Positions 13,048 through 63,058 of a DNA stretch of 64,000 nucleotides are shown here, piece by piece. Made by a program: the position numbers and the translations under genes. The stretch spans positions 1-64,000 of the forward strand of contig NW_020846333.1 of NCBI RefSeq assembly GCF_003704095.1, written 5' to 3'. The stretch is from Pocillopora damicornis. Its lineage: Eukaryota. A model generated the notes under the pieces. The model was not told the origin of the DNA. It saw only the letters and a program-made list of their open reading frames with translations, and did no database searches. The stretch's first letter is position 1, and each line of letters opens with the position of its first letter.

Positions 13048-14025
13048 CTATTTCAAAATGTACACTTTTTTCTGATCATGGCTAGTAACAAGAATACGCC
13101 CGTCTGGTGCTTTTGTTATCGCCATAGGCTTAGATAATCGAGTGATACTTTTGCCGGTGAAGCGACCGTCTAAAGAAAACTTTTGAACTCGGTAATTGTC
13201 AGTGTCACATACTAGAAGATTATTGGAGCTGTCTACAAGTAAACCACGCGGCAAGTTAAATTGTCCATCTTGATTCCCTTTTTTGCCAAACTTGTATAAG
13301 AATGTTCCTGACTGATCAAAAGCTTTTATGCAGTGCTTTTCTTTATCAGATACGAGAAACATGTTTTTGTGAAGAACGCAGCAGCTTGGACCATGAAGTT
13401 TCTCTGGACCTTTGTCTCCAAATGTGAAAATAGACTCTCCTTCCTTTGACATTACCTGTATCCTATTATTTTCTCTCTCGGTTACAATAATACGCTCTAC
13501 ATCATCCACAGTAACGTCTACTGGATTACCTAACTCTCCTTTCTCTTTACCGAATTTTCCAAAACTTTTCACCACAGTTCCTGTCTGAATATTAAGTCGT
13601 TGTATTCTGCAATTCCCTAGGTCTGCAATTAGGACTTCGTTGTCATTAAAAAACGAAATGCCACGAGGGTACTGAAACTGTCCTGTATTGCTACCCTCGC
13701 CTCCAGTTTTTCTCAAACAGTTGCCATCTTTATCAAAAACATAAACACAGTGGCCAAAGTTATCTGTCACAACTATCTGGCCTTCTGTATTCACAGCAAT
13801 GCCATATAACCGTTCAAACTTGTCCCCTGGAAAGAGCTTTAACTTCAACTCACTGATCACAAAAAGTTCACGTTCTTTAACCTGCACAGTCATGGGACAG
13901 GTCGGTAGTTTATCGCCATTAATCTTCACTTCAATGTTGTAGGCCCCTGGTACTTTGGGAGTAAACTTCAACCTAAGATTGCCATTTTCTTTCTCTTCAA
14001 CAATCACGTCTGTAATATCCTTGAC
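13048..14025 (-). CDS. TRIM-NHL C-terminal half (class B-type filamin end plus six NHL repeats); 5' part in gap
   Basis: IVEEKENGNLRLKFTPKVPGAY filamin motif; six NHL blades ending KKVYILK*. Confidence 0.9.
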   Translation of the reverse strand, partial: VKDITDVIVEEKENGNLRLKFTPKVPGAYNIEVKINGDKLPTCPMTVQVKERELFVISELKLKLFPGDKFERLYGIAVNTEGQIVVTDNFGHCVYVFDKDGNCLRKTGGEGSNTGQFQYPRGISFFNDNEVLIADLGNCRIQRLNIQTGTVVKSFGKFGKEKGELGNPVDVTVDDVERIIVTERENNRIQVMSKEGESIFTFGDKGPEKLHGPSCCVLHKNMFLVSDKEKHCIKAFDQSGTFLYKFGKKGNQDGQFNLPRGLLVDSSNNLLVCDTDNYRVQKFSLDGRFTGKSITRLSKPMAITKAPDGRILVTSHDQKKVYILK

Positions 14026-14125
14026 NNNNNNNNNNNNNNNNNNNNNNNNNNNNNNNNNNNNNNNNNNNNNNNNNNNNNNNNNNNNNNNNNNNNNNNNNNN
14101 NNNNNNNNNNNNNNNNNNNNNNNNN

Positions 14126-15367
14126 TTCCGATGCCCCGAGTGTCAGGCAGAAATCGATTTACCACAAGGAAATTGCTTCGACCGCTTGCCTAGCAGCTTT
14201 TTCCACAAAAGTCTGTTAGGTGTCCTTCTTGAAGCGGAAGATTGCGAAGCCATTGCGAGTCAACAACTGGACACTTGCTCGCAACATACGGAAGAAAGAG
14301 TACGATATTACTGCTCCTCGTGTGAAGCGTGTATTTGTCCGATTTGCGTCACCGAAGACCACCGAGGCCATGCGTTTGAAATGCTTGAAAAAGCAATGCA
14401 AGAGGATAAGAAAAACATTATGTCGACTGTCGAGACCATCAAGGAAAAGGTAAACTTGTTTCGAGCACAGTTAGAAAAAACATCAGAGGATGTGGAAATG
14501 ATTATTGCAATCGCTAAACAGGAAGTGTCGGAGGCAACTGAAGACGTGATCACAAAGACGAGACAGCAAGAAAAACAGCTCTTAGAGTCCTTAGAATAGA
14601 ACGAATGCCACACGTAAAAAAAGAATAGAACGAATCAACTCGGCTAAACAAGAACTGGAATCTCTAATAAAAAAAATTAACCAAGCAGCTGAATTTGCGG
14701 AGAGTCTGGTGCAACGAAGATCAGCTGTGGATATCATACAGAACAAAAACAAATTGAGGCAGAAACTTGAAGAGCTTCGTAGAGTTGAAGTTCCAAAACA
14801 TCGCCAGGCTACATTTGTCAAATTTACTGCCGCATCGCAACACAACTTTAAACTGGGTTCTATTCAGGTCTCCGAGAAGCCGGCAATCGCAGCTAAATCA
14901 ACTCTAGAAGGACTGGATCAAACTTTTCAAGTTGGTGTAGAAGCAAAGTTTACGTTGTGCCCACGGACATCTGGCGAGAGATGAGTGACCACGCTGATCT
15001 CAAAGATGAAGTCGAATTGCTAATAACATCCGCCAAAGATGTGACGAATGTGACTCTTGATGAGAAATATGACGGTAACGTTAGGCTGAAGTTTATTCCC
15101 AAAGTACCTGGGGCCTACAGCACTGAGGTGAAGATTAATGGCGATAAACTACCAACCTGTCCTATCACTGTGCAGGTTAAAGAACGTGAACTTGTCGTGG
15201 TCGGTGAGTTGAAGTTAAAGTTCTTTCCAGGGCACACGCTTGAACGGTTATATGGAGTTGTTGTGAATACAGAAGGCCAGATAGTTGTGACAGATAACCT
15301 TGGCAACTGTGTATATGTTTTTGATAAAGATGGCAACTGTATGAGAAAAATCGGAAGCAAGCGTAGC
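14126..15367 (+). pseudogene. Class A TRIM-NHL pseudogene (frameshifted), flanked by gaps
   Basis: Small insertion with stop at ~14597 (ttagaatagaacgaat) and a 1-bp deletion at ~14975 split the homology over three frames. Confidence 0.85.
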
Positions 15368-15467
15368 NNNNNNNNNNNNNNNNNNNNNNNNNNNNNNNNN
15401 NNNNNNNNNNNNNNNNNNNNNNNNNNNNNNNNNNNNNNNNNNNNNNNNNNNNNNNNNNNNNNNNNNN

Positions 15468-17167
15468 TACAAGTAAACCACGCGGCGGGTTAAATTGTCC
15501 ATCTTGACTCCCTTCTTTGCCGAACTTGTATAAGAATGTTCCTGACTGATCAAAAGCTTTTATGCAGTGGTTGCCCAAATCAGATACGAGAAACATGTTT
15601 TTGTAAAGAGTGCAGCAGCTTGGCCATAAAAGTTTTTCTGGGCCTTTGTCTCCAAATGTGAAAATAGATTCCCCCTCCTTTGACATCACCTGTATCCTAT
15701 GATTGCCCCACTCGGTTACAACAATGCGTTCGTCATCATCCACAGTAACGTCTATTGGCCTATCAAACTCTCCTTTTTCTCTGCCTTCTTTTCCAAAACT
15801 TTTCACAACAGTTCCTGTCTGAATATTAAGTTGTTGTATTCTGCAATTGCCTGAGTCTGCAATTAGGACTTCGTCGTCATTTAAAAACGAAATGCTATCA
15901 GGAGAAAGAAATTGTCCTGTATTGCTACCCTCGCTTCCAATTGTTCTCAAATGGTTGCCATCTTTATCAAAGACATATAAACAGTCGCCAAAGTCATCTG
16001 TCACAACTATCTGGCCTTCTGTATTCACAGCAATTCCACATAACCATCTAAGCGTGTCCCTAGGAAAGAGCTTTAGCTCCAACTCACCGACCACAACAAG
16101 TTCACGTTCTTTTACCTGCACAATCATTGGACAGGTCGGTAGTTTATCGCCATTAATCTTCACTTCAATGCTGTAGGCTCCAGGTACTTTGGGAGTAAAC
16201 TTTAGGCTAACATTTCCGTCGTACTCCTCATCAACAGTCACGTTTGTCACATCTTCGGCGGGTTTTAGTAGCAATTCGACTTGATCTTTGAGATCATCGT
16301 GGTCACTCATCTCCCCTCCAGATGTCCGTGGGCACAACGTAAACTTTGCTTCTACACCAGCCTGAAAAGTTTGATATAGTCCTTCTAAAGTTGATTTAGC
16401 TGCGATTGGCGGCTTCTCGGAGACTTGAATAGAACCCAGTTTAAAGTTGTGTTGCGATGCGGCGGTAAATTTGACAAATGTAGCCTGGCGATGTTTTGGA
16501 ACTTCAACTCCATGAAACTCTTCAAGTTTCTCCCTCAATTTGTTTTTGTTCTGTAGGATGTCTGCAGCTGATCTTCTCTGCACCAGGTTTTCCGCAAAGT
16601 CGGCTGCTTCATTCATTTGTTTTACTAGAGATTCCAGTTCTTGTTTAGCCGAGTTGATTCGCTTTATTCTCCTCCTACGCGTCATTTCTAAAGACTCTAA
16701 GAGCTGTTTTTCTTGTTGTCGCGTCTTTGTGATTATACGTTCCGTTGCCTCCGACACTTCTTGTTTAGCGATTGCAATAATCATTTCCACATCCTCTGAT
16801 GTTTTCTCTAATTTTCTTAACTCTGCTCGAAACAAGTCTGCCTTTTCCTTGATGGTCTCGACGGTCGACATGATGTTTTTCTTCTCCTCTTGCACTGCTT
16901 TTTCAAGCAAGTCAAACGCATGGCCTCGGTGGTTTTCGGTGACGCAAACTGGACAAACACTCGCCTCACACGTAGAGCAGTAATATCGCAGTCTTTCTTC
17001 CGTATGTTGCAAGCAAGTCTCCTGTTGTTGCCTCGAAATGGCCTGGCAATCTTCCGCTTCAAGGACACCTAACAGACTTTTGTGAAAAAAGCTGTTGGGC
17101 AAAAGGTCGAAGCGATTTCCCTCTGGTAAATCGATTTCTGCCTGACACTCGGGGCATCGGAATTTCC
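15468..17167 (-). CDS. Class A TRIM-NHL, both ends lost in gaps; visible part uninterrupted
   Basis: Open frame from KFRCPEC through B-box, coiled coil and filamin to NHL blade 5 (GQFNPPRGLLV). Confidence 0.9.
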
Positions 17168-17267
17168 NNNNNNNNNNNNNNNNNNNNNNNNNNNNNNNNN
17201 NNNNNNNNNNNNNNNNNNNNNNNNNNNNNNNNNNNNNNNNNNNNNNNNNNNNNNNNNNNNNNNNNNN

Positions 17268-17490: not shown

Positions 17491-20470
17491 TGACATTTTG
17501 AAATAAAGTTATGTAAAAAATTCATTGGATACATTGTTTTACTAGCAGCTTGGTTTCCCTGGAAAATAAAAAAAGTCATGGCGAGTTCATTTATAGTCTA
17601 ACTATAATCGGCCATCAGGAACCGGAGCTGAGGCAACAAAACTCCATACCTCTTCACGGGACAAAACAGGGATAAGCAGTAGTGGTGAAGAGTCATTAGT
17701 GTTGTAAGATAAACCCTCACACTATTTTGAGAAATGCACTATTTAAAAATTTCTATATCCATAATCGGCTAAACGGTAGCGATTTCATGTTCATATGAAC
17801 TCGCTTACAGATTTCCCGGTACATGTCCCTGATTGCCTAGCGAACTTGACACTCATCCCGAGGAGGAAGCGAGTTCTCAGGGTTGGGTTTTAAACGATGT
17901 GAATGGCATGTACCACAACAATCACAGCTCTTGCACGTACGTATTGCAGACCTTAATCCTGCAACAATGGTTTTATGGATCACTCTTTGCTGGAATCACA
18001 TGACTAGAGAGGTTTGCATTTTTGTTCTTACGAGCACTACTTTCATTCTACGACATAATTTTTGTAAAAAAGAAAAAATAAGAAAAGTTTTGACAAGTAA
18101 ATGTAGCGGTTTTTTCATCTCTTGGTAATATTACCCTTCCTAGTGAAAAAAAAATGATAACAATAAAGCAATAGAAAATAAACAAATAAATTCATTGATG
18201 AGTTTAAAAAAAAAAATTTCGAATAAACAAATAAATAAAACGTGAATGAAAATAACTGTCGACCCATTTCTTCCACTAAACCATCAGAAACACCGGCGAA
18301 TTGTTGAGTAATTGAATATTTTATACAAAACCAAATGGAACAAACTACATAAAGTGCTTATTGAACGGGTTAACACGATGGTAAATCAGAACTCACCTCA
18401 AATATTTCAATTTTTGCCTGCTTCATTTGGATATTACATAATTTGTCAACGTTTAAATATACATGAATCACTATTGCGGACCTATTTCTGTTGCAAACCT
18501 TTGGGTCAGTTTAGACAAATGGGAAGTATCCATGGTTAAGACAAGAGAGGATGATCCTCTTTTGATTAAGAGGAATATATCCCGGGCAATTTTTTGTTTC
18601 TTGAGATGAACGTCGAATTTATGAAACTGTAACGAGTTCGCTTTCATATAAATTTACCCCTTTGCCGCCTTTAACGGGAAGCGAAATAAACAAGCGGCAT
18701 GTGGCTAATTTGCATAAATCAGCTAGTGTGCCTTCCTGTCTGACCTGAAGATTGAAGTACAAACTTCACAATTTCCGGTGTTATCATGGCCAATTTACAT
18801 TATCAACTCAGTTGACAAGAACAAATCATTTTGACACTCTGTCCATTATTAAAATTATCAAGAAGGATTTCCATTTTTAACTGAAAAGAATAAATTGAAG
18901 TTTTTGTCTTGCTTTTTTCTTAAAGAACCTTGACGATTCGACAGTTCATAAAATTCGAGGATATTGAGAAGCATGTGTTAAAAAAAAAGTTTGAAGCCAA
19001 CGGATAAACAGTTGCATGTCACAAACGGAGGAGGTCATGGCAGATTTCCGTTTTGTTTTCTCGGAAATCTAAATATAGCCTTTAAAAGCAGCTTTCTAGT
19101 TTTTCAAAAGAAAATACTCAATTTTCTGTTTACCTCGAACGATTTCCTAAAAAACATTAGCGTCTTGTCTGCACTCTCAAAGTTCACTGAGAATAACTAA
19201 TTAAAGATAGACTCCATATAAGGAAGACGTAAAGTATGGTCGAATGTCTCGCCACAAGAAAGCAAAAAAACTAATTTCGGTCTCAGTTAACGTTGATAAA
19301 GAAGTTGACAAATTCCCTTTCATGGGCGAGAGAGGGGGTAGGGAGAGAAGAAATGACCATATTTTGAAGAAATACGAAGGCCAACACATTTCTAAAATGA
19401 GCCTTATATACACGTTTTGTGATTTTCAGATAATTGTCGCTCCTCATTTTAAAATTTTCCTCCCAAAACGCCCGAAGCTTTCCCTCCAGTTAAAATCCAT
19501 GAATTCTTTCATCCTCTATTAACGATAACACTCCAAGGACGGATTTGCAGTTTTTAAAAATAAAGCTATTAGACAACAATAATTCAACTCAGATAAAAAG
19601 TCTAACCTTACAACGAAGACAACTGAGCCAAGGAAAGTGACAGGCCAGAAATAGATCCAATTAAATGAACATTGCCTTATTTTCTAGGAATCTGAAGCAG
19701 AGGCCAACTGTTTGAATTTTTGTAAGTATTATCCACCCTTATGTGGAGTTACATGCAAAAATTTCTTCCTCGAAATGCGCATCGATAACAGTCTGAGAAC
19801 TAAGAAGGAAAATCGCACCACAAGATTGTCCGTCAAAGTGACAGACGTTCCTTTATCCTGAGCAGAAGTTATCATTTGAGTAAACACACGAGTTGTTTGC
19901 TGGTCAATGTTGTTAGTCTCGTTTTGGGTTTCGTTCCATCAAACATTCGACTAATTTAACTGGCGATTAGCGGGTTTTCGTTTTTTTCGGAGAAGTGCAA
20001 CATCAACGTTAAAAGCTGCGACCGAGTGGCGGAGAGTATAACAGGGAAAATTGAAAATACTTGATCGCAGGTTACTTTTCGAGGGACAAACAATTCTTTC
20101 ACTGATCATCCTGATAATGACCTGTGCTCAGGTTACGAAACATCAGTAACTACTATTGCTAACAGTTCCCCACGGATAAACTCACTCGACACGATCCTCT
20201 GTTACGCTCGAGTTCGAATGAGCAACAACAAGAAAAAACAAACAAGCAAAAAGCTGTTGTACATACTGGACTGGTGCCATTACTTTTTCCCTTCAATTCA
20301 TGACCACTTAGGCGAAGGTTGATTCGACAGTTCAAAAACAGCCTCTTACTGCGTTTTTCCAAATCACACTTTGTAACATTTATGCCTTTAATCGCTTTTA
20401 TCGAGGCTTCATCACAGATAACAACGTCTTTTTTATCATTACAAAAAGGTCACTTAAGTCCTGAAGTGCA

Positions 20471-20527
20471 ATTGGCTAGAAGAAGTCAGTTGTCATAGAC
20501 TTTGCGCTGTTTTCTCGGAAACTGAAA
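20471..20527 (+). promoter_or_regulatory. Class A promoter: ATTGG, GAS TTCTCGGAA (20512-20520) and ISRE-like GAAACTGAAA (20518-20527)
   Basis: Direct motif match about 100 bp upstream of ATG 20619. Confidence 0.65.
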
Positions 20528-20618
20528 TAATATCTCTGATTTCGTATGAGTGTTTTGACTAAGCTCGTCGCTTTAATATTGGTAACACATCAGTTAACTA
20601 CAGTTTAACGCGATCGTC

Positions 20619-22646
20619 ATGAATCCTCTCGTAAAGAACCTCACGAAACAACTTACTTGCTCGATTTGTCTCGATACCTATACCGAGCCCAAAACTATAT
20701 CATGTCTTCACACATTTTGCTGTGAGTGTTTAGAGAGACATGCAAGAGTGAGCCAGAGACAAGGGAAATTCAGATGCCCCGAGTGTCAGGCAGAAATCGA
20801 TTTACCACAAGGAAATCGCTTTGACCGTTTGCCTAACAGCTTTTTTCACAAAAGTCTGTTAGGTGTCCTTGAAGCGGAAGATCGTGAAGCCATTCCGAGG
20901 GAACAACAGGACACTTGCTCGCAACATACGGAAGAAAGAGTACGATATTACTGCTCCTCGTGTAAGGTGTGTATTTGTCCGATTTGCGTCACCGAAGACC
21001 ACCGAGGCCATGCGTTTGATGTGCTTGAAAAAGCAGTGCAAGAGGAGAAGAAAAACATCGTGTCGACTGTCCAGACCATCAAGGAAAAGGCAAACTTGTT
21101 TCGAGCAGAGTTAAGAAAATTAGAGGAAACATCAGAGGATGTGGAAATGATTATCGCGATCGCAAAACAAGAAGTGTCGGAGGCAACTGAACACGTGATC
21201 ACAAAGACGCGACAACAAGAAAAACAGCTTTTAGAGTCCTTAGAAGTGATTCGTAGGAAAAGACTAGAGCGAGTTAACTCGGCTAAACAAGAACTGGAAT
21301 CTCTGGTAAAAATGCTCCAAGGAGCTGAATTTGCGGAGGATCTGGTGCAAAGAGGATCAACTGTGGATATCATACAAAACAAAAACAAATTGAGACAGAA
21401 ACTTGAAGAGCTTCGTGGAGTTGAAGTTCCAAAACATCGCCAGGCTACATTTGTCAAATTTACCGCCGCATCGCAACACAACTTTAAACTGGGCTCTATT
21501 CAAGTCTCTGAGAAGCCGGTTATCGCAGCTAAATCAACTTTAGAAGGATTAGATCAAACTTTTCAGGTCGGTGAAGAAGGAAAGTTTACTTTGTGCCCAC
21601 GGACATCCGAAGGAGAGATGAGTGACTACGCTGACCTCAAAGATCAAGTCGAATTGCTGATAACACCTGCCAAAGATGTTACAAACGTGACTGTTAATGA
21701 GAAATATGACGGAAATTTTGGGCTAGAATTTACTCCCAAAGTACCTGGGGCCTACAGCATTGAAGTAAAGATTAATGGAGATAAACTACCGACCTGTCCC
21801 ACGATTGTGCAGGTTAAAGAACGTGAACTTGTTGTGGTTGGTGAGTTGAAGTTAAAGCTCTTTCCAGGGGACAAACTTGAACGTTTATATGGAGTTGCTG
21901 TGAATACAGATGGCCAGATAGTTGTGACAGATAACCGTGGTAAATGTGTATATGTTTTTGATAAAGATGGCAACTGTATGAGAAAAATTGGAAGCAAGCG
22001 TAGCTATACAGGACAGTTTCAGTTTCCCAATGGCATTTCGTTTTTAAATAACAACGAAGTCCTTATTGCAGACTCGAGCAATTGCAGAATACAACGACTT
22101 AATATTCAGACAGAAGCTATAGTGGCGAGTCTAGGAAGAAAAGGTAGAGAAAAAGGAGAGTTTGGCATGCCTATAAACGTTACTGTGGATGATAAAGAAC
22201 GCATTGTTGTAACTGAGTGGGACAATCATAGGATACAGGTGATGTCAAAGGAGGGAGAGTCTATTTTCACATTCGGCGACGACGGCCCAGAGAAACTCCA
22301 TTATCCAAGTTGCTGCCTTCCATACAAAAACGTGTTTCTCGTGACTGATGCAGGCAACCACTGCATAAAAGCTTTTGATCAGTCAGGAATATTCCTATAC
22401 AAGTTTGGCAAAAGAGGGTATCAAGATGGACAATTTAAAACGCCGAATGGTTTGCTTGTAGACAGCTCTAATAATCTTCTAGTATGTGACTCTGGCAATA
22501 ATCGAGTTCAACAGTTTTCTTTAGACGGCCGCTTCACCGGCAAAAGTATCACTCGTTTATCAGACCCCACTTCGATAACAAAAGCACCAGACGGAGGTAT
22601 TCTTGTTACTAGCTTTGATGAGAAAAAAGTGTACATTTTGAAATAG
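20619..22646 (+). CDS. Intact class A TRIM-NHL E3 ubiquitin ligase (RING-Bbox-CC-filamin-6xNHL), 675 aa, single coding exon
   Basis: Complete ATG-to-TAG ORF with all domain motifs recognisable. Confidence 0.95.
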   Translation: MNPLVKNLTKQLTCSICLDTYTEPKTISCLHTFCCECLERHARVSQRQGKFRCPECQAEIDLPQGNRFDRLPNSFFHKSLLGVLEAEDREAIPREQQDTCSQHTEERVRYYCSSCKVCICPICVTEDHRGHAFDVLEKAVQEEKKNIVSTVQTIKEKANLFRAELRKLEETSEDVEMIIAIAKQEVSEATEHVITKTRQQEKQLLESLEVIRRKRLERVNSAKQELESLVKMLQGAEFAEDLVQRGSTVDIIQNKNKLRQKLEELRGVEVPKHRQATFVKFTAASQHNFKLGSIQVSEKPVIAAKSTLEGLDQTFQVGEEGKFTLCPRTSEGEMSDYADLKDQVELLITPAKDVTNVTVNEKYDGNFGLEFTPKVPGAYSIEVKINGDKLPTCPTIVQVKERELVVVGELKLKLFPGDKLERLYGVAVNTDGQIVVTDNRGKCVYVFDKDGNCMRKIGSKRSYTGQFQFPNGISFLNNNEVLIADSSNCRIQRLNIQTEAIVASLGRKGREKGEFGMPINVTVDDKERIVVTEWDNHRIQVMSKEGESIFTFGDDGPEKLHYPSCCLPYKNVFLVTDAGNHCIKAFDQSGIFLYKFGKRGYQDGQFKTPNGLLVDSSNNLLVCDSGNNRVQQFSLDGRFTGKSITRLSDPTSITKAPDGGILVTSFDEKKVYILK

Positions 22647-25600
22647 ACTTTTTCAAAAGTGAACTTTACTTCTTGAGCCGCTCCTTACCTGTGTTTTGTT
22701 TAATTTTTTAATGCTGTTTTATCACTTGTCTAGAAGAAGTCTTAGCAATAATATTAAGACTTACAATTACTCTTAGAGACAAAAACCCTTTGACTTGAAG
22801 TAATTAGGCCAGGTCTTTCAAGTTCGTCAGTTCCAAGCCGTTTTAATCTGCTCCATTTCTCGTCACTTGGCCATTCATGTTTCTTCTCGGTTTATTAATA
22901 TTCTCCTTAATGGCTTTTTCTTCAATCTAAGGTTGTGTTTTTGTTTTTTCTTTAAGTTCGAGGTATTTTTGCGCATATTCGGTAGCGATTTAAATAATCT
23001 AGACCAAGAAATTTAACGGCGATTCCTGAAAGAATTGCTAATATAGCAGAAAAACTACATATAGAAAAACTACATGCTGTATAGAAAAATTTAACAAGTT
23101 TAACTTTTTTCTCAGACTGAGAATATATAGCTGGAAAACGTTAAGACCATGTGCTCCTTTTTGCAATCATTGATTGGTCAGGATAGATTAAGTTCGGGTT
23201 TTTCAATCTAAGAAAATATATTTTTTATTAAAATTTAATTCAAGAACAATTTATGATTGCATAATTTCACATGTATAAGTAATCAACAAGCATAAGAAGG
23301 AAGGTGACAACTGTTTTTAAAAATGGGCATCTACTGGGTAATTACGTCATAATTAGAGGTGGCTACTGATTTTCTAACTAAGCTTTTTCTAACTAAGTGT
23401 TCTCAAGACAGTTTTGAAAAATAGTCTTAGATTTTGTTCCATATAACAAGGCGAGACAAATTAAGAATGCATGAATAAATGAGACTCAAGCGTTATTTCA
23501 ATTTTTTTGTTATGAATGATTAGAAAATAACTTCCAGTATTAAAAGGAAATATCATTTTAAAATAAAGTTATTTGAAAAATTAACGCGGAAATATCATTT
23601 CAAAACTTGCAAAATCATCAATACCTTGGTTTCCCTGGAAAAAGAAAGGCTATGTCGAGTTTCTAGTGTAACTATAATTGGCTATCAGGAGACCGGAGCC
23701 GAGGAACAAAATTCCAAACCGCCATATAGGACAAAAGCAGGGATAAGGTTTGTTCGTGAATAGTCACTAGCGTTGTAAGATTTACCGTCACAAATTTGAA
23801 AATATCGTTCAAATCGGAAGCGATTTTATGTCCATATAGACTCGCTTAGAGATTTCTCATTACATGTCCCTGCAGCTGATTGCCCAGCGAACTTGACATT
23901 CACCCCGTGGAAGGAGCGAGTTCACGGGGTTAGGTTTTAAACGTTGAGAATCGCATGCGGCACAACAATCACAGCTCTTGCACGTATTGCAAACCTAATA
24001 GGACGCTTTTCTTATAATCCTGCAACAATGGTTTGTTGGATCACTCTTCAGTGCTGGAATCACGTGACCAGAAAGGTTTGCATTTTTGTTTTTTCCAGCA
24101 CTACTTTCATCGTAGGATATAATTTTTGGAAGAGAGAAAAAAAAAGTTTTTACAGATAAATGTAGCGGTTTTTTCATCTCTTGATAATATTTACCCTTCC
24201 TAGTAAGGAAAAATGCATAACAATAAAGCAATAAAAAATAAACCAATGAATTTATCAAGAAGTTTTTAAAAAATGTCGAATAAGGAAATAAATAAAACGT
24301 GAATGAAGATAACTGTCGTCCCTTTTCTTCCACTAAACCATCAGAAACGCAGGCGCATTGTTCAGTTATTGAATCTTTTGTACAAAACTAAATGAAACAA
24401 ACAAAATAAAGTGCTTATGGAATGGTGAACACGATGGTAAGTCAGAACTAACCTCAAATATATCACTTTTTGCCTGCGTCATTTGGTTATTACATAATCT
24501 GTCTACGTTTACAAATATGTAATATGAATCTCTATTGCAGACCTATTTCTGCTGCAAACCTTTGGGTTCGTTTAGACAAATGGGAAGTATTCATAGTTAA
24601 GACAAGAGAGGATGATCCTGTTTTGGTTGAGAGGAATATATCCCAGGTAAGTTTTTTGTTTCTTGAGATGAACGTCGAATGTATGAAACTGTGACGATTT
24701 AGTTTTCATATAAACTCACCCCTTTCCCGCCTCTAACGGGAAGTGAAAGGGCAAGTGGCTAATTTGCATAAATCAGCTTGCGTGCCATCCTGTCTAACCT
24801 GAAGATTGAAGTACAAACTCTAATCCGCTCACGATTTCCGGTGTTATCATGACCAATTTACAATATCAACTCATTTAACAAGAACAAATTATTTTGACAC
24901 TCCATTAAAATTATCAAGTAGGATTTCCATTTTTAACTGAAAAGAATAATTTGAAGCTTTTGTCTTGCTTTTTTCTTAAAGAACCCTAATGATTCGACAG
25001 TTGATCAAATTCTAGGATATTGAAAAGCATGCGTTAAAAAAACGATAAACAGATAAACAGTCTCATATCACAAACGGAAGAGGTCATGGCAGATTTCCGT
25101 TCTATTTTCTCGGAAATCTAAATATAGGCTTAAAAAGCAGCTTTCTAGTTTTTTCAAAAGAAAATAATTCATTTCCTGTTTACTGTATCTGAACGATTTT
25201 CTCAAAGACATTACCGCCTTATCTTCACATTTAAAGTTCTCTGCGAATGACTAGTCCATACAAGATAGACTCCATATAAGATAGAAGGGAAATAGAGTCG
25301 AATGTCTTTCCATGAAAAGCGAAAAACAAATTTTGGTCCCAGTTGATGAAGACGTTGTGAGACAAATTCCCTTTCTTGCTTTCATGAACGAGAGAGGGTT
25401 GCCACTGACGAAGGAAGGAGGGGAGGGGTGGGGAGAGAAGGAACACATTTCTAAAATGAGCTGTTTATACGCGTTTTGCGGTTTTCAGACCTTTCTCGTT
25501 CCTCATCTAAATATTTTCCTCCCATAACGCTTCAAGGCTTTCCCTCCAGCTACAATTCATGAATTCTTTCGTTACAACGAAGTCAACTCAGTCAAGGAAC

Positions 25601-29319: not shown

Positions 29320-29419
29320 NNNNNNNNNNNNNNNNNNNNNNNNNNNNNNNNNNNNNNNNNNNNNNNNNNNNNNNNNNNNNNNNNNNNNNNNNNNNNNNNN
29401 NNNNNNNNNNNNNNNNNNN

Positions 29420-33850: not shown

Positions 33851-33877
33851 CATTGTTTCTAACTATTGTCAATACCG

Positions 33878-46327: not shown

Positions 46328-46700
46328 ATGGAGCCGCTGAAGAAACAAGTTACTTGTTCGATTTGCTTCGATACCTACACAGAGCCCAAAACTATATCAT
46401 GTCTTCACACGTTTTGCTGTGAGTGTTTGGAGAAACATGTAAGAGTGAGCCAGAAAAAGGGAAAATTTCGATGCCCCGAGTGTCAGGCAGTGATCGATTT
46501 ACCAGATGGAAATCGCTTCGACCGTTTGCCTAACAGTTTTTTCCATAAGAGGTCATTGAATCGCGCTGTTCGACAGGGTGGTGCGGCGAGTATAGCTTTA
46601 CTTGTTATCAATGCAGCGTAACCAATCCCCAGATGTAATACTGCTTCGACTGCGAACGATTCATGGGCCCTGATTGTTTCAACGCACATGAAGTGCTCAT
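46328..46700 (+). pseudogene. Class B TRIM 5' fragment (RING plus broken B-box1)
   Basis: MEPLKKQVTCSICFDTY...; frameshift and stops at ~46590-46640; joins intergenic sequence at ~46700 without a gap. Confidence 0.85.
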
Positions 46701-52335: not shown

Positions 52336-52392
52336 ATTGGTCAGAGGAAGTCAGCCGTGATGGACTTTGTACTGTTTTCTTGGAAACTGAAA
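52336..52392 (+). promoter_or_regulatory. Class A promoter: ATTGG, GAGGAAGT, GAS TTCTTGGAA (52377-52385), ISRE-like GAAACTGAAA (52383-52392)
   Basis: Direct motif match. Confidence 0.6.
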
Positions 52393-52477
52393 TAGTAGCT
52401 GATATTTCGTAGAAATGTTTTGAAAGGGCTCGTCACTTGAAAAACGAACCAGTTTACTACAGTTTAAGGTGATCATC

Positions 52478-54554
52478 ATGAATCCTCTCTTGAAGAGTCT
52501 CAAGAAACAAGTTACTTGCTCGATTTGTCTCGATACCTACACCGAGCCTAAAACTATATCATGTCTTCATACATTTTGCTGTAGGTGTTTAGAGAGACGT
52601 GCAAGAGTGAGCCAGAGACAATGGAAATTCAGATGCCCCGAGTGTCAGGCAGAAATCGATTTACCGCAAGGAAATCGCTTCGACCGTTTGCCCAAAAGCT
52701 TTTTTTCACAAAAGTCTGTTAGGTGTCCTTGAAGCGGAAGATCGCCAAGCCATACCGAGGCAACAACAGGAAACTTGCTCGCAGCATACGGAAGAAAGAG
52801 TACGATATTACTGCTCTTCGTGTGAGGCGTGTATTTGTCCAATTTGCGTCACCGAAGACCACCGAGGCCATGCGTTTGATGTGCTTGAAAAAGCAGTGCA
52901 AGGGGAGAAGAAAAACATCGTGTCGACTGTCCAGACCATCAAGGAAAAGGCAAACTTGTTTCGAGCAGAGTTAAGAAAATTAGAGAAAACATCAGAGGAT
53001 GTGGAAATGATTATCGCGATCGCTAAACAAGAAGTGTAGGAGGCAACTGAACACGTGATCACAAAGACGCGACAGCAAGAAAAACAGCTTTTTAGAGTCT
53101 CTAGAAATGACGCGTAGGAGGAGAATGGAACGAATCAACTCGGCTAAACAAGAACTGAAATCTCTAATAAAAAAAAATAACTAAGCAGCTGAAGTTGCGG
53201 AGAATCTGGTGCAGCGAAGATCAGCTGCGGATATCATACAGAACAAACACAAATTGAGGCAGAAACTTGAAGAGCTTCATGGAGTTGAACTTCCAAAACA
53301 TCACCGGGCTACATTTGTCAAATTTGCCGCTGCATCTCAACACAACTTTAAACTGGGTTTTGTTCAAGTCACCGAGAGGCCGGCAATCGCAGCTAAATCA
53401 ACTCTGGAAGGACTGGAGGAAACTTTTCAGGCTGGTGTAGAAGCAAAGTTTGCATTGTGCCCACGGACATCTGGAGGAGAGATAAGTGACTTCGCTGATC
53501 GCGAAGATCAAGTCGAATTACTAATAACACCCGCCAAAGATGTGACAAACGTGACTGTTAATGAGAAAGATGTGACAAACGTGACTGTTAATGAGAAATA
53601 TGACGGAAATGTTAGGCTGAAGTTTACACCCAAAGTACCTGGGGCCCACAGCGTTGAAGTGAGGATTGATGGCGATAAACTACCGACCTGTCCCATGACT
53701 GTGCAGGTAAAAGAACGTGAACTTGTTGTGGTCGGCGAGTTGAAGTTAAAGCTCTTTCAAGGGGACATGATTGAACGGTTAAGTGAAATAACTGTAAATA
53801 CAGAAGGCCAGATAGTTGTGACAGATACATTTGGCCACTATGTCTATGTCTTTGACAAAATGGCAACCGTTTGAGAAAAACTGGAGGCGAGGGTAGCAAT
53901 ACAGGACAATTTCATCCGTCTGAACGCATTTCGTTTTTAAATGACAACGAAGTCCTAATTGCAGATTGCGGAAATAGCAGAAGGGGGGAAGGGGAATACA
54001 ACGACTTTATTTTCAGACAGGAAAGGAACTGTAGTGAAAAGTTTTGGAAAATTCGGTAAAGAAAACGGAGAGCTAAATAATCCAGTAGGCGTTACTGTGG
54101 ATGATAAAGAACGCATTGTTGTGAGTGGGGAAATAATAGGATTCAGGTGATGTCGAAGGAAGGATAATCTATTTTTACATTTGGAGACAATAGCCGAGAG
54201 AAACTCCAATATCCAAACTGCTGCATTCTTAACAAAAACATGTTTCTCGTATCTGATGGAGGCAACCACTGCATCAAAGCTTTTGATAAGTCAGGAACAT
54301 TACTATACAAGTTTGGCAAAGAAGGGAATCAAGATGGGCAATTTACAACGCCGTATGATTTGCTTGCAGACAGCTCCAATAATCTCTTAGTATGTGATTC
54401 TGGGAATAACGGAGTTTAGCAGTTTTCTTTAGACGGTCGCTTCACCGGCAAAATTATCACTTGTTTATCTAAGCCTAAAGTGATAACAAAAACACCAGAC
54501 GGGCGTATTTTTGTTACTAGCCATAATGACAAAAAAGTGTATATTTTGAAATAG
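52478..54554 (+). pseudogene. Full-length class A TRIM-NHL pseudogene
   Basis: Poly-T frameshift at ~52700, TAG at 53037-53039, further indels and stops, and a 30-bp tandem duplication at 53536-53595. Confidence 0.92.
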
Positions 54555-56795: not shown

Positions 56796-56915
56796 ATGGA
56801 TCCTCTCTTTAAGAATGTCAAGCAGCAAGTTACTTGCTCGATTTGTCTCGATACTTACACCCAACCTAAAACTATATCATGTCTTCACACATTTTGCTGT
56901 GAGTGTTTAGAGAGA
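56796..56915 (+). CDS. Class A TRIM-NHL 5' end (RING start); truncated by gap
   Basis: MDPLFKNVKQQVTCSICLDTYTQPKTISCLHTFCCECLER; preceded by GAS TTCTTAGAA (56695-56703) and GAAAGTGAA. Confidence 0.8.
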
Positions 56916-57471: not shown

Positions 57472-57680
57472 TTAACCCTTAATCTGTGAATGATCAGCAT
57501 CTGATTTCTCCTTTCAATATCACACATGAATCAAACATTACGGTCACGACAATAAAGAAAATGATAATTAACTAAAGAAACTATTGTTTGTTCAAAAAAT
57601 TCTCCTTGCCAGTACATTAGGAAATGTATAGAGAGCCGTATGAAGAATATTCGTATTGATGTTTAGGTGTAAAGGGTTAA
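57472..57680. mobile_element. TTAA-type MITE at the same paralogous site as 56332
   Basis: ttaaccctt ... aaagggttaa; matching flanks show the insertion predates the unit duplication. Confidence 0.75.
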
Positions 57681-57978
57681 AACGTCTGTTGTATGTGACA
57701 ATGACCAATGTTTCGTTACCCATTCTAGTGCAATTGGACTAAATTTCCTTTTATGATAGATCACTCGAAGATTGATTTGACCACTCACCATAAATATACG
57801 AAAAAAAGCCTCGTTTGTTGCATTGTCCAAATCACATTTATTGAAATTCTTGTCTTTAATTGCTTTTATTTGAAGCAACTTGAATTACCGAAAGTTTGGT
57901 TGTCTAAAATCGAGGTTTCATCTCTGTCAACATGGTCTTTTTATCATTACAAAAAGGTCAGCTAAGGCCTGGAATACG

Positions 57979-58035
57979 ATTGGCCAGAGGAAGTCAGCTG
58001 TCATGGACTTAATGCTGTTTTCTCGGAAACTGAAA
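57979..58035 (+). promoter_or_regulatory. Class A promoter: ATTGG, GAGGAAGT, GAS TTCTCGGAA (58020-58028), ISRE-like GAAACTGAAA (58026-58035)
   Basis: Direct motif match about 90-140 bp upstream of ATG 58120. Confidence 0.65.
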
Positions 58036-58119
58036 TAATATCTCAGATTTCGTATGAGTGTTTTGACAGGGCTCGTCGCTTGATTACGCATCAGTCAACT
58101 ACAATCTTAGGTGATCGTT

Positions 58120-60144
58120 ATGAATCCTCTCTTTAAGAATCTCAAGAAACAATTTACTTGCTCGATTTGTCTCAATGCTTACACCGAGCCCAAAACTATA
58201 TCATGCCTTCACACATTTTGCTGTAAGTGTTTAGAGACGCATGCAAGAGTGAGCCAGAGACAAGGGAAATTCCGATGCCCCGAGTGTCATGCAGAAATCG
58301 ATTTACCGCAAGGAAATCGCTTCGACCTTTTGCCTAACAGTATTTTTCACAAAAGTCTGTTAGGTGTCCTTGAAGCGGAAGATCGCCAAGCCACTCCAAG
58401 GCAACAACAAGAGACTTGCTCGCAACATACGGAAGAAAGACTACGATATTACTGCTCCTCGTGTGAGGCGTGTATTTGTCCAATTTGCGTCACTGAAGAC
58501 CACCGAGGCCATGCGTTTGACGTGCTTGAAAAAGCAGTGCAAGAGGAGAAAAAAAACATCCTGTCGACTGTCCAGACCATCAAGGAAAAGGCAAACTTGT
58601 TTCGAGCAGAGTTAAGTACACTAGAGAAAACATCAGAGGATGTGGAATTGTTTATCGCAATCGCTAAACAAGAAGTGTCGAAGGCAACTGAACACGTGAT
58701 CACAATGACGCGACAACAAGAAAAACAGCTCTTAGAATCCTTAGAAATGACGCGTAGGAGGAGAATAGAGCGAATCAACTCGGCTAAACAAGAACTTAAA
58801 TCTCTGGTAAAACAGATGAACCAAGCAGCTGAGTTTGCGGAGAATCTGGTGCAGAGAAGATCAGCTGCGGATATCATTCAGAACAAAAACGAGTTGAAAC
58901 TTGGAGATCTTCGTGGAGTCGAAGTTCCAAAACATCGCCAGGATATATTTGTCAAATTTACCGCTGCATCGCAACACAACTTTAAACTGGGTTCTATTCA
59001 AGTGTCTGAGAAGCCGGCAATCGCAGCTAAATCAACTCTGGAAGGACTGGGTCAAACTTTCCAGGTTGGTGTACAAGCAAAGTTGACGTTGTGCCCACGG
59101 ACATCTGGAGGAGAGATGAGTAACTGCGCTGATCTCAAAGATCAAGTGGAAATGCTGATAAAACCCGCCAAAGATGTGACAGACGTGATTGTTGATGAGG
59201 AATATGACGGAAAGGTTAGGCTGAAGTTTACTCCCAAAGTACGTGGGGCCTGCAACATTGAAGTGAGGATTAATGGCGATAAACTACCGACTTGTCCCAT
59301 GACTGTGTGGGTAAAAGAACGTGAACTCGTTGTGGCAGGTGAGTTGAAGTTAAAACTCTTTCCAGAGGACAAGCTTGAACGGTTATATGGAATTGCTGTG
59401 AATACAGAAGACCAGTTAGTTGTAACAGATAACTTAGGCCACTGTGTTTATGTTTTTGACAAAACTGGCAACCGTTTGAGAAAAACTGGAGGCGAGGGTA
59501 GCCATACAGGCCAATTAAAGTTCCCTAAGAGCATTTCGTTTTTAAATGACAACGAAGTCCTAATTGCAGACTCAAGCAATTGCAGAATACAACGACTTAA
59601 TATTCAGACAGGAACTGCAGTGAAAAGCTTTGGAAAAAAAGGCAGAGAAAAAGGAGAATTTGATAGGCCAATAGACGTTACTGTGGATGATGAAGAGCGC
59701 ATTGTTGTAACTGAGTGGGGCAATGGTAGGATACAGGTGATGTCAAAGGATGGTGAGTCTATTTTTACATTTGGAGACAGAGGCCCAGAGAAACTCTGTA
59801 GGCCAACCTGCTGCATTCCTTACAAAAACATGTTTCTCGTAACTGACGCAGGGAACCACTGTATAAAAGCTTTTCATCAGTCAGGAACATTCTTATACAA
59901 GTTTGGCAAAGAAGGGAATCAAGATGGACAATTTAACCTGCCGCGTGGTTTGCTTGTAGACAGCTCCAATAATCTTCTAGTATGTGACTTTGGCAATAAC
60001 CGAGTTCAACAGTTTGCTTTAGACGGTCGCTTCACCGGCAAAAGTATCACTCATTTATCTTATCCTGTGGCGATAACAAAAGCACAAGACGGGCTTATTC
60101 TTGTTACTAGCAATGATGAGAAAAAAGTGTATATTTTGAAATAG
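58120..60144 (+). CDS. Intact class A TRIM-NHL, 674 aa
   Basis: Complete ORF. True ATG placed at 58120 by homology; the ORF track starts at an upstream GTG. Confidence 0.95.
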   Translation: MNPLFKNLKKQFTCSICLNAYTEPKTISCLHTFCCKCLETHARVSQRQGKFRCPECHAEIDLPQGNRFDLLPNSIFHKSLLGVLEAEDRQATPRQQQETCSQHTEERLRYYCSSCEACICPICVTEDHRGHAFDVLEKAVQEEKKNILSTVQTIKEKANLFRAELSTLEKTSEDVELFIAIAKQEVSKATEHVITMTRQQEKQLLESLEMTRRRRIERINSAKQELKSLVKQMNQAAEFAENLVQRRSAADIIQNKNELKLGDLRGVEVPKHRQDIFVKFTAASQHNFKLGSIQVSEKPAIAAKSTLEGLGQTFQVGVQAKLTLCPRTSGGEMSNCADLKDQVEMLIKPAKDVTDVIVDEEYDGKVRLKFTPKVRGACNIEVRINGDKLPTCPMTVWVKERELVVAGELKLKLFPEDKLERLYGIAVNTEDQLVVTDNLGHCVYVFDKTGNRLRKTGGEGSHTGQLKFPKSISFLNDNEVLIADSSNCRIQRLNIQTGTAVKSFGKKGREKGEFDRPIDVTVDDEERIVVTEWGNGRIQVMSKDGESIFTFGDRGPEKLCRPTCCIPYKNMFLVTDAGNHCIKAFHQSGTFLYKFGKEGNQDGQFNLPRGLLVDSSNNLLVCDFGNNRVQQFALDGRFTGKSITHLSYPVAITKAQDGLILVTSNDEKKVYILK

Positions 60145-61511
60145 ACTCTTTCAAAAGTGAACTTCGCTTCTTGAGCCGTTCCTTTAACCTGTGTTTTGTT
60201 TTATGTTTTACGCTGTTTTATCACTTGTCTGGAAGAACTCTTAGCGATAATATCCACAAGACTTACAATTACTCTTAGATACGAATATTTCTTGACTCCA
60301 AGTAATTAGCCTTGGTCTTTCAAGTTCGCCAGTTTCAAGCCGTTTTAATCTCCCCCATCCTTCCTCACTTGGCCATCCATGTTTCTTCTCGGTTAATTAT
60401 TATCCTCTTTAATTGCTTTTTCTCCGATCTAAAGGCTTTGTTTTTTTTATTTAAGGTCAAGGTATTTCTCCGCATCATCAGTGGTGGTTTGAATAATCTA
60501 GACCACGAAATTTAAAATGTCTAGTTCAGCAGAACAACTACATGCTGTATAGAAACATTTAACAAATTTGACTTTTTTTATAGCCTGAGAATATATAGGT
60601 GGAAAACGTTAAGACCGAGTGCTGCTTTTTGCAGTCATTGATTGGTCAACTTTTTTTAAAAATGGGCATCTACTGGGTAATTATGTCATAATTAGAGGTG
60701 GTTACTGACTTTCCAACTAAGCTTAAGTGTTAGCTCTAAACTATTTAAACTATTTATTTTAAGAAATAGTCTCAGGTTTTCTTCTATGTAATAGGGCGAG
60801 AAAAATTAGAAATGCATTAAATAAATAAGACTTAAAAGTTAATTCCAGTTTGTTGTAAAGGATGATCATAAAATATGTTCCAGTTTTAAATATAAATAAC
60901 ATTTTTCAATAAAATTATTTGAAAAACTTTATTGGGAAACATCATTTCAAACTTACAAAATCATCTATATTTGCTCCCCTAGAAAATTAAAAAAAAAAAT
61001 TAAGTCTATGTCATTTATACTTTAAATATAATTGGCAAGCAGGAATGTAGTGTTTTTTCCATCTCTTTGGATGTTTTGAGATGCCAAAGCATTAAGTCAC
61101 CTTTAGCTCTTTCTTTAAGCAGGTAAAATTTTATATTGGCAAGTTAAAAACTAACTAAAAAAAAAAGAAAAAAAAAAAGAAAGAAACCAACAATAACGAG
61201 CAGAAACAAAAGAAAAAATGTGCCTAAATGTATTATTCATAGACATTTAGTTAGAGGGACTACATCCTTTAGTACCTTAGTGTCACTAGCTTATAATTTC
61301 TTCTCACAGTATCACTGTTACATCAAACAATAAGGTCATGAGAATAAAGGAAATGATCATCAGCCAAAGAAACTCTTGATTGTTAAGCAAATTCTCCTTG
61401 TTAGTAAGTTANNNNNNNNNNNNNNNNNNNNNNNNNNNNNNNNNNNNNNNNNNNNNNNNNNNNNNNNNNNNNNNNNNNNNNNNNNNNNNNNNNNNNNNNN
61501 NNNNNNNNNNN

Positions 61512-63058
61512 ACTTGTTTCGAGCAGAGTTAAGAAAATTAGAGAAAACATCAGAGGATGTGGAAAGGATCATCGCGATCGCTAAACAAGAAGTGTCGGAG
61601 GCAACTAAACACGTGATCACAAAGACGCGACAGCAAGAAAAGAAACTTTTAGAGTCCTTAGAAATGACACGTAGGAAGAGACTAGAGCGAGTTAACTCAG
61701 CTAAACAAGAACGTGAATCTCTGGTAAAACAAATAGAGCAAGCAGTTGAATTTGCGGAGAACCTGGTGCAGAAATCAGCTGCAAATATCATACAGAACAA
61801 AAACAAATTAAGGCAGAAACTTGAAGAGCTTCGTGGAGTTGAAGTTCCAAAACATCGCCAGGCTATATTTGTCAAATTTACTGCCGCATCGCAACACAAC
61901 TTTAAACTGGGATCTATTCAGGTCTTCGAGAAGCCGGCAATCGTAGCCAAATCAACCATCGAAGGACTGAATCAAACTTTTCAGGCTAATGTACAGGCAA
62001 AGTTAACGTTGTGCCCACGGACATCTGGAGGAGAGATGAGTGACTACCCTGAAGATCAAGTCGAATTCCTCGTAACACCCGCCAAAGATGTGACAAACGT
62101 GACTGTTGATGAGGAATATGACGGAAATGTTAGGCTGAACTTTACTCCCAAAGTACCTGGGGCCTACAACATTGAAGTGAAGATTAATGGCGATAAACTA
62201 CCGCCCTGTCCCATGACTGTGCAGGTAAAAGAACGTGAACTTGTCGTGGTCGGTGAGTTGAAGTTAAAGCTCTTTCCGGGGGACAAGCTTAGAGGGTTAT
62301 TTGAAATTGCTGTGAATACAGAAGGCCAGATAGTTGTGACAGATAACCTTGGCAACTGTGTTTATGTCTTTGACAAAAATGGCAACTGTTTGAGAAAAAT
62401 TGGAGGCAGGGGTAGTAACAAAGGATTATTTCAGCACCCCGTTGGCATTTCGTTTTTAAATGACAACGAGGTCCTTATTTCAGACTTCACAAATTGCAAA
62501 ATACTACAACTAAATATTCAGACAGGAACTGTGGTGAAAAGTTTTGGAAAATTCGGTAAAGAAAAAGGAGAGCTAACTAATCCAGTATACGTTACTGTGG
62601 ATGATGAAGAGCGCATTGTTGTAACCGAGAGTAGCAATCATAGGATACAGGTGATGTCAAAGGAAGGAAGATCTATTTTTACATTTGGAGACAAAGGCCC
62701 AGAGAAACTTGCACGGCCAACCTGCTGCATTTTTCACAAAAATATGTTTCTCGTATCTGATACAAGCAACCACTGCATAAAAGCTTTTGATCTGTCAGGA
62801 ACATTCTTATACAAGTTTGGCGAACAAGGGGATCAACATGGACAATTTCGAAGGCCGCGTGGTTTGCTTGTAGACAGCTCCAATAATCTTCTAGTATGTG
62901 ACACTGAAAATAAACGAGTTCAGCAGTTTTCTTTAGACGGTCGCTTCACCGGCAAATGTATCACTCCTTTACCTAAGCCTATGGCAATAACAAAAGCACC
63001 AGACGGGCGTATTCTTGTTACTAGCCATGATCAGAAAAAAGTGTACATTTTGAAATAG
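61512..63058 (+). CDS. Class A TRIM-NHL, coiled coil to C-terminus; 5' part in gap
   Basis: Open frame to KKVYILK*. Confidence 0.9.

Follow-up and report, generated by a model that had tools for sequence, protein, structure and literature searches.

Evidence for diversifying selection on the ligand face of the NHL propeller in a coral TRIM-NHL gene array

Why should a β-propeller keep its strands nearly constant while its loops change radically from one gene copy to the next? The question is raised by a stretch of 64,000 nucleotides from the coral Pocillopora damicornis (NCBI RefSeq assembly GCF_003704095.1, contig NW_020846333.1, positions 1 to 64,000 of the forward strand), hereafter the window. 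This 64-kb window belongs to scaffold C2968 of an assembly of 234 Mb in 4,393 pieces, and nearly all of its long open reading frames (ORFs) are members of a single TRIM-NHL family. A preliminary description, made from the letters of the window, had attributed the loop changes to selection on ligand specificity. The analysis reported here leads to a similar view: with a probability of about 80%, diversifying selection acts on the ligand face of a coral TRIM-NHL array.

Positively selected codons in the NHL domains

The genes of the window are intronless, have 675-736 codons and encode a RING domain, one or two B-boxes, a coiled-coil region, a filamin repeat and six NHL repeats (Pfam). Four genes are complete, five are cut by assembly gaps and at least seven other pieces are fragments or pseudogenes. 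At least nine NHL loci can be found, with a protein identity of 73-80%. The nine copies described earlier correspond to eight complete NHL domains, whereas the ninth, truncated by the gap 15368-15467, retains blades 1-5. Two types of N-terminal half (T1 and T2) are distinguished in the genes used for the selection tests, which are the following:

20619 to 22646, + strand: c21k, complete gene of 675 aa (ORF and Pfam), T1, one B-box; NHL domain at 21801-22643
43597 to 45624, + strand: c44k, complete gene of 675 aa, T1; NHL domain at 44779-45621
47807 to 50017, + strand: c49k, complete gene of 736 aa, T2, two B-boxes; NHL domain at 49172-50014
58120 to 60144, + strand: c59k, complete gene of 674 aa counted from the ATG at 58120, T1; NHL domain at 59299-60141
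13048 to 14025, - strand: c13k, T2, end of the filamin domain and full NHL domain at 13051-13893; N-terminal part lost in the gap 14026-14125
15468 to 17165, - strand: c15k, T1, residues 50-614, NHL blades 1-5 at 15468-16127; blade 6 falls in the gap 15368-15467 and the start of the RING domain in the gap 17168-17267
27381 to 28499, - strand: c27k, T2, residues 304-675, full NHL domain at 27384-28226; cut by the gap 28500-29181
29421 to 30800, + strand: c30k, T2, residues 219-675, full NHL domain at 29955-30797; cut by the gap 29320-29419
61514 to 63058, + strand: c62k, T1, residues 160-675, full NHL domain at 62213-63055; cut by the gap 61412-61511

All analyses were confined to gap-free stretches; nothing was filled in and no analysis crosses a gap. 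The nine NHL domains align over 281 codons with zero gaps, and alignment error is therefore no issue. Pairwise nonsynonymous divergence (dN) is about 0.13 and synonymous divergence (dS) about 0.24, which is unsaturated, and the ratio dN/dS (ω) of the whole domain is about 0.54. The loop strings quoted in the preliminary description (xxPx in blades 2-6, D/E-xx-N in blades 3 and 4) are all found in the translations, and the strand and bottom-loop motifs given there as constant are intact, or one or two residues off, in each copy.

Site models were fitted with a custom GY94/F3x4 codon-likelihood engine with fully optimised branch lengths and naive empirical Bayes (NEB) posteriors. While model M0 gives ω = 0.69, M2a is preferred over M1a (twice the log-likelihood difference, 2ΔlnL, = 84.4, p = 5e-19; ω2 = 4.8, p2 = 0.11), M8 over M7 (2ΔlnL = 98.6, p = 4e-22), and M8 over M8a, where ω is fixed at 1 (2ΔlnL = 84.4, p = 4e-20; M8 ω = 4.5). 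The selected class comprises 11-12% of the codons, with ω = 4.5-4.8. Numbering NHL residues such that residue n starts at window position 21801+3(n-1) in c21k (residue 1 = 21801), the posterior (P) exceeds 0.95 at residues 28, 75, 92, 93, 140, 141, 143, 167, 168, 184, 214, and 255, and exceeds 0.8 at a further eight (46, 66, 77, 205, 216, 231, 257, and 272). In c21k they span:

21882 to 22616, + strand: positively selected codons (NEB posteriors, M2a and M8)

In a four-stranded propeller blade, the D-A and B-C connections share one face and the A-B and C-D connections share the other; these are called top and bottom loops here, on grounds given in the next section. All 20 called residues belong to D-A loops or B-C loops, or are the residue with which strand A starts, right after the conserved Pro. 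Codons with P>0.95 make up 12 of the 89 top-loop codons, none of the 46 bottom-loop codons and none of the 138 strand codons (Fisher p = 8e-7). In motif register, the sites mostly occupy Pro-2, Pro-1, or Pro+1 (xxPx) and Asp+1, Asp+2, or Asp+4 (D/E-xx-N); the bottom loops, with ω = 0.39, contain no selected site. The claim that variability is concentrated on one face rather than scattered is borne out: the ends of the D-A loops and the B-C loops are hit in all six blades, the A-B and C-D loops never.

Selection seems to be restricted to this recognition domain. Over residues 50-394 (B-box, coiled coil, and filamin) of four genes no positive selection was detected (2ΔlnL = 0.45), while the NHL part of those same four genes gave 2ΔlnL = 13.3; the filamin domain of eight genes was also negative (2ΔlnL = 0.09). 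Regarding synonymous rates, the Nei-Gojobori (NG86) top-loop dS of 0.31-0.38, against 0.20-0.24, had suggested islands of old divergence at the hot spots. These were rejected, as synonymous divergence at codons with an invariant amino acid is 0.191 near hot spots and 0.189 elsewhere (p = 0.48); the raised top-loop dS is a counting artefact of multiply changed codons.

The pattern recurs outside the window. Four independent replicate sets were taken from contigs C629, C60, C3386 with C4149, and C2671 with C548, the last of which is about 35% identical to the window genes, and M2a beats M1a in all four (2ΔlnL 34.7, 13.7, 26.4, and 23.4, respectively). The 20 replicate sites overlap the 20 of the window at 13 positions (hypergeometric p = 6e-13); 15 are top-loop sites, four are Pro+1, one lies in strand 2D and none in a bottom loop. 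A set of 120 database proteins, mostly from independent assemblies and with 75-99% identity to c21k, has 25 of its 30 most variable columns in top loops and none in bottom loops; the 30 include 19 of the 20 window sites. In this set the column entropy of top loops is 1.04 bits, against 0.39 for strands and 0.42 for bottom loops.

The propeller fold and its relation to RNA-binding NHL domains

The RING domain matches PF00097 with 33-35 bits (cutoff 21) and PF13445 with 33-37 bits, and its Cys/His ligands can be seen in every full-length copy. The B-box (PF00643) is matched in one stretch in c21k (37.8 bits) and in two stretches in c49k (47.9 bits). For the coiled coil, PF25600 (TRIM_CC) reaches 17.5 bits in c49k, under its cutoff of 30, while the filamin repeat (PF00630) scores 40.4 and 41.3 bits (cutoff 26.9) and NHL (PF01436) 97.5 bits. 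A SPRY domain found no match in the Pfam scan, and the C-terminal domain is NHL. The proteins begin directly with the RING domain, with neither an evident signal peptide nor an evident membrane segment; they are therefore taken to be cytosolic. The nearest named proteins are annotated as "TRIM3-like" or "TRIM71-like" in P. damicornis, P. verrucosa, and Stylophora pistillata.

An AlphaFold2 (AF2) model of the c21k NHL domain, built from a 28-sequence alignment, has 24 strands in six four-stranded blades (predicted local distance difference test, pLDDT, 93.7; predicted template modelling score, pTM, 0.91). Foldseek template modelling (TM) scores are 0.85-0.88 to Thin/TRIM32, TRIM71/LIN-41, and TRIM2/3 and 0.79-0.81 to Brat, with E values of 2e-23 to 6d69 and 3e-22 to 6fq3. 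In the model the N-terminal strand closes blade 6 as its strand D, and the filamin domain therefore attaches on the A-B/C-D side. The "upper" surface by which LIN-41 binds RNA is the face opposite the filamin domain (Kumari et al., PMC5908797), from which it follows that the D-A/B-C side is the ligand-binding top face. Similarly, the binding groove of human TRIM-NHL domains is central at the top surface (Chaikuad et al., PMC9634614).

In zebrafish LIN-41, the RNA is contacted by Arg564, Arg581, Arg611, Lys628, Asp629, and Tyr658 (PMC5908797). With a chain index equal to the residue number minus 415, all six contact letters match chain 6fpt_A. R564, R611, and Y658 are the residues preceding the conserved Pro of blades 1-3, whereas R581 and K628/D629 directly follow the conserved Asp (+1/+2) of blades 1 and 2, respectively. 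Blade for blade, these contacts correspond to NHL positions 28, 45/46, 75, 92, 93, and 123, the equivalence being one of motif register, not of coordinate superposition. A residue alignment to solved NHL structures by phmmer was dropped, as its local alignments slip by whole blades. Five of the six equivalent positions are called selected in the window or the replicates, and position 123 (Y658) has P of about 0.5-0.6. The earlier statement that the top-face positions are those that bind RNA in LIN-41 thus fits, all six contact residues falling at hot-spot motif positions.

The chemistry of the surface is different. Position 28 is occupied by R, W, or G, position 75 by Y, S, F, C, or H and position 92 by L, S, N, Y, or F. 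The basic pocket of LIN-41 (R564, R581, R611, and K628) is not kept, positions 28, 45/46, 75, and 92 being hypervariable and mostly non-basic. Over 28 face positions per copy there are 2-6 Lys/Arg and 2-4 Asp/Glu, and the LIN-41-equivalent residues are mostly aromatic, small or polar. A LIN-41-type basic pocket is therefore not conserved, and the ligands may be RNA, protein or others. An orthologue of LIN-41/TRIM71 was rejected as an identity for the family on account of the lost basic pocket and of at least 97 loci, against a single-copy, slowly evolving gene. On the whole, diversification of ligand specificity as first proposed is supported, with hot-spot residues that are rich in aromatics, roughly neutral and without a conserved basic patch. 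With dN/dS at the hot-spot codons above 1 rather than at or below it, and with the sites on one face, the interpretation of the preliminary description stands.

It might be hypothesized that the paralogs are post-transcriptional regulators of the LIN-41, Brat, and Mei-P26 kind, whose face changes would adapt the sequence or shape of RNA that is recognized, be it endogenous, transposon or viral, and would not serve the recognition of proteins. The hot spots do coincide with the RNA-contact positions of LIN-41, the closest solved folds are RNA-binding NHL domains, and RNA-binding modes of NHL domains evolve rapidly (Kumari et al., PMC5908797). The proposal nevertheless appears doubtful, as LIN-41 contacts the RNA backbone mainly by Arg and Lys, whereas the equivalent residues here are of the kinds listed above and the K/R count of the face (2-6) is set against a D/E count of 2-4. 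Thin/TRIM32, the best Foldseek match, is moreover known from the literature as a protein binder.

Recombination, drift, allelic variation, and the structure of the array

The inflation of likelihood ratios by gene conversion or recombination, or by a chimeric or haplotig-bearing short-read assembly, has to be considered for any tandem array. The NHL tree of the window is star-like (bootstraps 19-45), the pairwise homoplasy index (PHI) test detects recombination over all sites (p<0.001) and at third positions (p = 0.004), the array is interrupted by many 100-N joins, and the genome paper of P. damicornis reports high heterozygosity and missing repeats (PMC6208414). Such an artefact is still very unlikely to account for the signal. 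The likelihood ratio is significant with a star tree (2ΔlnL = 120), with three random topologies (106-114) and in three partitions with their own trees (20.0, 29.1, and 35.5). In a tree-free test, pairwise Nei-Gojobori rates were computed in the window set at codons called only in other clusters: dN at these cross-validated codons is 0.61 against a domain dS of 0.245, which gives ω = 2.49 [1.77-3.45], while ω is 0.43 at the other codons. The same columns are the most variable in the 120 proteins mentioned above, the copies differ by dS of at least 0.15 and are hence not alleles, and recombination alone cannot put a nonsynonymous excess on one face of a fold.

Exchange between genes did, however, take place. 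The N-terminal halves fall into T1, with one B-box (c21k, c44k, c59k, c15k, and c62k), and T2, with two (c49k, c30k, c27k, and c13k). Between T1 and T2, the B-box and coiled coil have a dS above 1 and filamin one of about 0.5; from residue ~379 onward, i.e., in the NHL part, dS is 0.15-0.3, the level found within a type. For the NHL part, a tree with T1 and T2 as separate clades is rejected by an approximately unbiased (AU) test (ΔlnL 21.1, p = 0.013). From these two results it follows that the NHL part was exchanged between old subfamilies. No recent gene-conversion tract was found, the longest identical run between any two copies being 64-78 nt; recent conversion is thus rejected, and the exchange is real but not recent. 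Such exchange would keep the scaffold alike across genes and re-sort the loop variants. Genes of both types are intermingled within one array (20619-63058, nine-gene alignment).

Relaxed constraint after duplication, with neutral drift of exposed loops, is highly improbable. Loops generally tolerate substitutions, the array has pseudogenes and fragments, and ω over whole loops is below 1. Against this, M8a is rejected (2ΔlnL = 84.4, ω = 4.5), the cross-validated ω of 2.5 has a lower bound of 1.77, the bottom loops are equally exposed and yet have ω = 0.39 without any selected site, and the same codons recur in five independent clusters.

At the level of alleles or near orthologs the picture changes. 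In clusters of at least 90% identity, whose members are about 98% identical and which comprise only 11-13 full-length members each, a small sample, three tight clusters had 0, 1, and 4 hot-spot hits, and a fourth proved to be a mix of paralogs. Allelic hypervariability resembling that of the major histocompatibility complex (MHC) or of allorecognition loci was set aside on this ground, and paralog-level diversity speaks for what would be a set of stable specificities. Histocompatibility occurs in corals on a genetic basis yet to be identified, and allorecognition loci typically show diversifying selection on a binding surface, but a colony-fusion (self/non-self) system with the variable face as polymorphic determinant is hardly credible for cytosolic, RING-first proteins that lack an evident signal peptide or membrane segment and whose hot spots are not polymorphic in the tight clusters, whereas an allorecognition determinant has to be extremely polymorphic among alleles.

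The genome as a whole has at least 97 loci with a match to the NHL domain (E <= 1e-20), most of them within other tandem arrays. Such arrays can be found on contigs C629, C155, C60, C3386, C4149, C2671, C548, and C3119. One array subgroup ends in "...NHRIQIFE", not in "...KKVYILK"; it has about 35% identity to the window genes and selection at the same positions. In the window, the following pieces were excluded from the selection tests:

52478 to 54551, + strand: T1-like pseudogene with frameshifts and seven stop codons in the NHL part
33866 to 35627, + strand: T2-type copy with a frame change near 35280; NHL domain cut by the gap 35628-35727
11862 to 12182, - strand: NHL fragment, blades 4-6, with one TGA; adjoins the gap 12185-12284
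14126 to 15367, + strand: T1-type fragment of 1.2 kb, residues 51-462, in three reading frames

The last of these is flanked by the gaps 14026-14125 and 15368-15467, lies on the strand opposite to both neighbours and is a pseudogene or else a contig placed or oriented wrongly. Each of its two flanking gaps divides parts of different genes on opposite strands, and the sequence across them is therefore not continuous. The gaps 17168-17267, 28500-29181, and 29320-29419 take away the N-terminal parts of three genes, while the gap 25695-25794 is intergenic.

Regarding expression, contigs assembled from polyA RNA-seq in four studies tile 20616-23400 at an identity of at least 95%, the 1 kb upstream is empty, and no supported intron joint was found in these contigs over c21k. 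This fits transcription of c21k or of near-identical relatives as an unspliced coding exon. Within 19600-23400, the contig cover begins only a few bases from the ATG (20619) and runs at least 750 nt beyond the stop codon, which suggests a very short or separately spliced 5' untranslated region (UTR) and a long 3' UTR, although the contigs cannot fix the ends. Upstream of the gene lies a composite motif:

20512 to 20527, + strand: TTCTCGGAAACTGAAA, TTCnnnGAA plus GAAAnnGAAA, about 95 nt before the ATG of c21k

Exact or near copies of TTCTCGGAAACTGAAA occur at 8156, 52377, and 58020, and the motif has 15 matches in the window against 1.5 expected. Together with an inverted CCAAT box (ATTGGC) it forms part of a promoter block of about 230 nt kept before the ATG of most paralogs (20369-20621, 8005-8257, 57870-58122, 52228-52480, and 47557-47809); the copy of c44k has lost the motif by deletion. 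TTCnnnGAA and GAAAnnGAAA resemble the consensus of STAT sites (gamma-activated-site-like, GAS-like) and of IRF sites (interferon-stimulated-response-element-like, ISRE-like). The motif may serve as a lead only, and duplication alone would explain its recurrence. A T2-type variant, TTCTAGGAATCTGAAR, is present at 19682, 25646, 43011, 56124, and 57280 (+ strand), some of them 0.6-1 kb ahead of T1 genes, others in DNA between genes. Short RING-only fragments adjoin some of these copies (46316-46561 and 56796-56915), and together they look like remnants of truncated gene copies.

Several points weigh against selection on a ligand face and against what may be built on it. The top-face assignment draws on the strand topology of the AF2 model and on the LIN-41 motif register. 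The site models were run with a custom engine instead of PAML or HyPhy, and recombination was checked by PHI, by alternative and partition-specific trees and by the tree-free test. The top loops as a whole class have ω below 1 (B-C 0.87, D-A 0.66), because they also contain invariant residues, and the cross-validation repeated in four other clusters gave ω of 1.85, 1.27, 2.04, and 1.26; the intervals of two of these, out of five sets in all, include 1. The assembly consists of short-read contigs in 100-N scaffold joins, which makes copy order and orientation uncertain and leaves room for some chimerism. Hot spots are not polymorphic within the clusters of at least 90% identity, which places the diversity between fixed paralogs, and diversification cannot be shown to continue today. 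Assembled contigs at an identity of at least 95% can neither separate c21k from near-identical relatives nor give expression levels, and regulation is known from the motif only. Finally, the ligand, the E3 activity and the immune role are matters of inference.

A possible recognition repertoire and its counterparts in known systems

Taken as a whole, diversifying selection on the propeller face can be cast as a model. The window is a tandem array, one of many, of apparently expressed, intronless genes for predicted TRIM-NHL E3 ligases, in which purifying selection holds the RING, B-box, coiled-coil, and filamin domains together with the propeller strands and bottom loops. About 20 codons, 2-4 per blade, at the ends of the D-A loops (conserved Pro) and in the B-C loops (after Asp/Glu) are under strong diversifying selection. 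In this way every paralog carries a binding surface of its own on a shared, predicted ubiquitin-ligase framework, and the top face would set the choice of substrate or target. The genes could then make up a germline repertoire of cytosolic recognition receptors or restriction-factor-like ligases, for which such a pattern would be expected and which would track intracellular targets that change fast, such as proteins or RNAs of viruses, parasites, symbionts or transposons. That a germline set of at least 100 coral cytosolic TRIM-NHL ligases serves as intracellular immune receptors with a variable top face is put forward tentatively, with somewhat less than even confidence.

NHL is a conserved RNA- or protein-binding module of developmental regulators, and here the same face has been repeatedly diversified in a huge coral family. 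The family could be a recognition repertoire like those that vertebrate TRIM proteins base on B30.2. If this is true, it would be a previously unrecognised class of invertebrate intracellular immune receptors, built on NHL and not on SPRY, leucine-rich repeat (LRR) or immunoglobulin (Ig) domains. Coral genome papers report innate-immune expansions, while the selection pattern of the TRIM-NHL family is not described in the literature searched. With some 20 defined positions that may determine specificity, and natural variants at them, the family is suited to binding screens, which opens to experiment the questions of antiviral defence and symbiont handling in corals and of ligand specificity in NHL domains.

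LIN-41/TRIM71, Brat, Mei-P26, TRIM2/3, and Thin/TRIM32 have the same domain order, including filamin, and the same six-bladed NHL fold. The variable codons described here include the LIN-41 contact positions R564, R581, R611, K628, and D629, and the match to Y658 is variable but weakly supported. These known class VII TRIM-NHL proteins are conserved developmental regulators in single or few copies with a fixed surface, basic in LIN-41, whereas the coral family has its at least 97 loci, in intronless tandem arrays, and contact positions with ω ≈ 4.8 that are not conserved as basic.

Among TRIM proteins of another kind, the B30.2 loops of primate TRIM5α and TRIM22 and of the finTRIM and bloodthirsty TRIMs of fish are reportedly under positive selection. 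Common to these and the coral genes are the RING-B-box-coiled-coil chassis, a C-terminal recognition domain with selected surface loops and lineage-specific tandem expansions; as in such diversifying TRIM families, selection is limited to the loops at the surface of that domain, although the B30.2/PRY-SPRY domain itself has no match here. TRIM5α and the finTRIMs are vertebrate proteins with B30.2/SPRY, and an antiviral role has been shown for them, while the coral genes carry NHL and their role is putative.

The WD40 propellers of the fungal NWD/HNWD proteins (HET-E/D/R) are said to have a few hypervariable top-face positions per repeat. Positive selection and a sequence exchange that homogenises the scaffold of a β-propeller are shared features. 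In HET-E/D/R, however, the repeats are of the WD40 type, belong to STAND/NLR-type proteins and are shuffled inside single genes, whereas in the coral the NHL domain sits on a predicted E3 ligase and exchange occurs between paralogs, without long recent conversion tracts.

In corals themselves, a scleractinian-restricted NHL-domain gene of Acropora has pairwise Ka/Ks>1 and was reported to be induced at larval symbiont uptake (Shinzato et al. 2020, PMC7783167). It is likewise a fast-evolving coral NHL-domain gene, but was studied as a single orthogroup by whole-gene Ka/Ks, without site or structure mapping or a link to TRIM arrays. NHL-repeat and B-box orthogroups are expanded in some corals (PMC11639872), and the top groove differs among four human TRIM-NHL proteins (PMC9634614). 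In the open-access and bioRxiv literature searched, no paper was found that deals with coral TRIM-NHL arrays or with diversifying selection at the site level in an NHL propeller. Set beside the vertebrate families, the coral genes are a TRIM family that has diversified likewise, but in a cnidarian and on another recognition domain.

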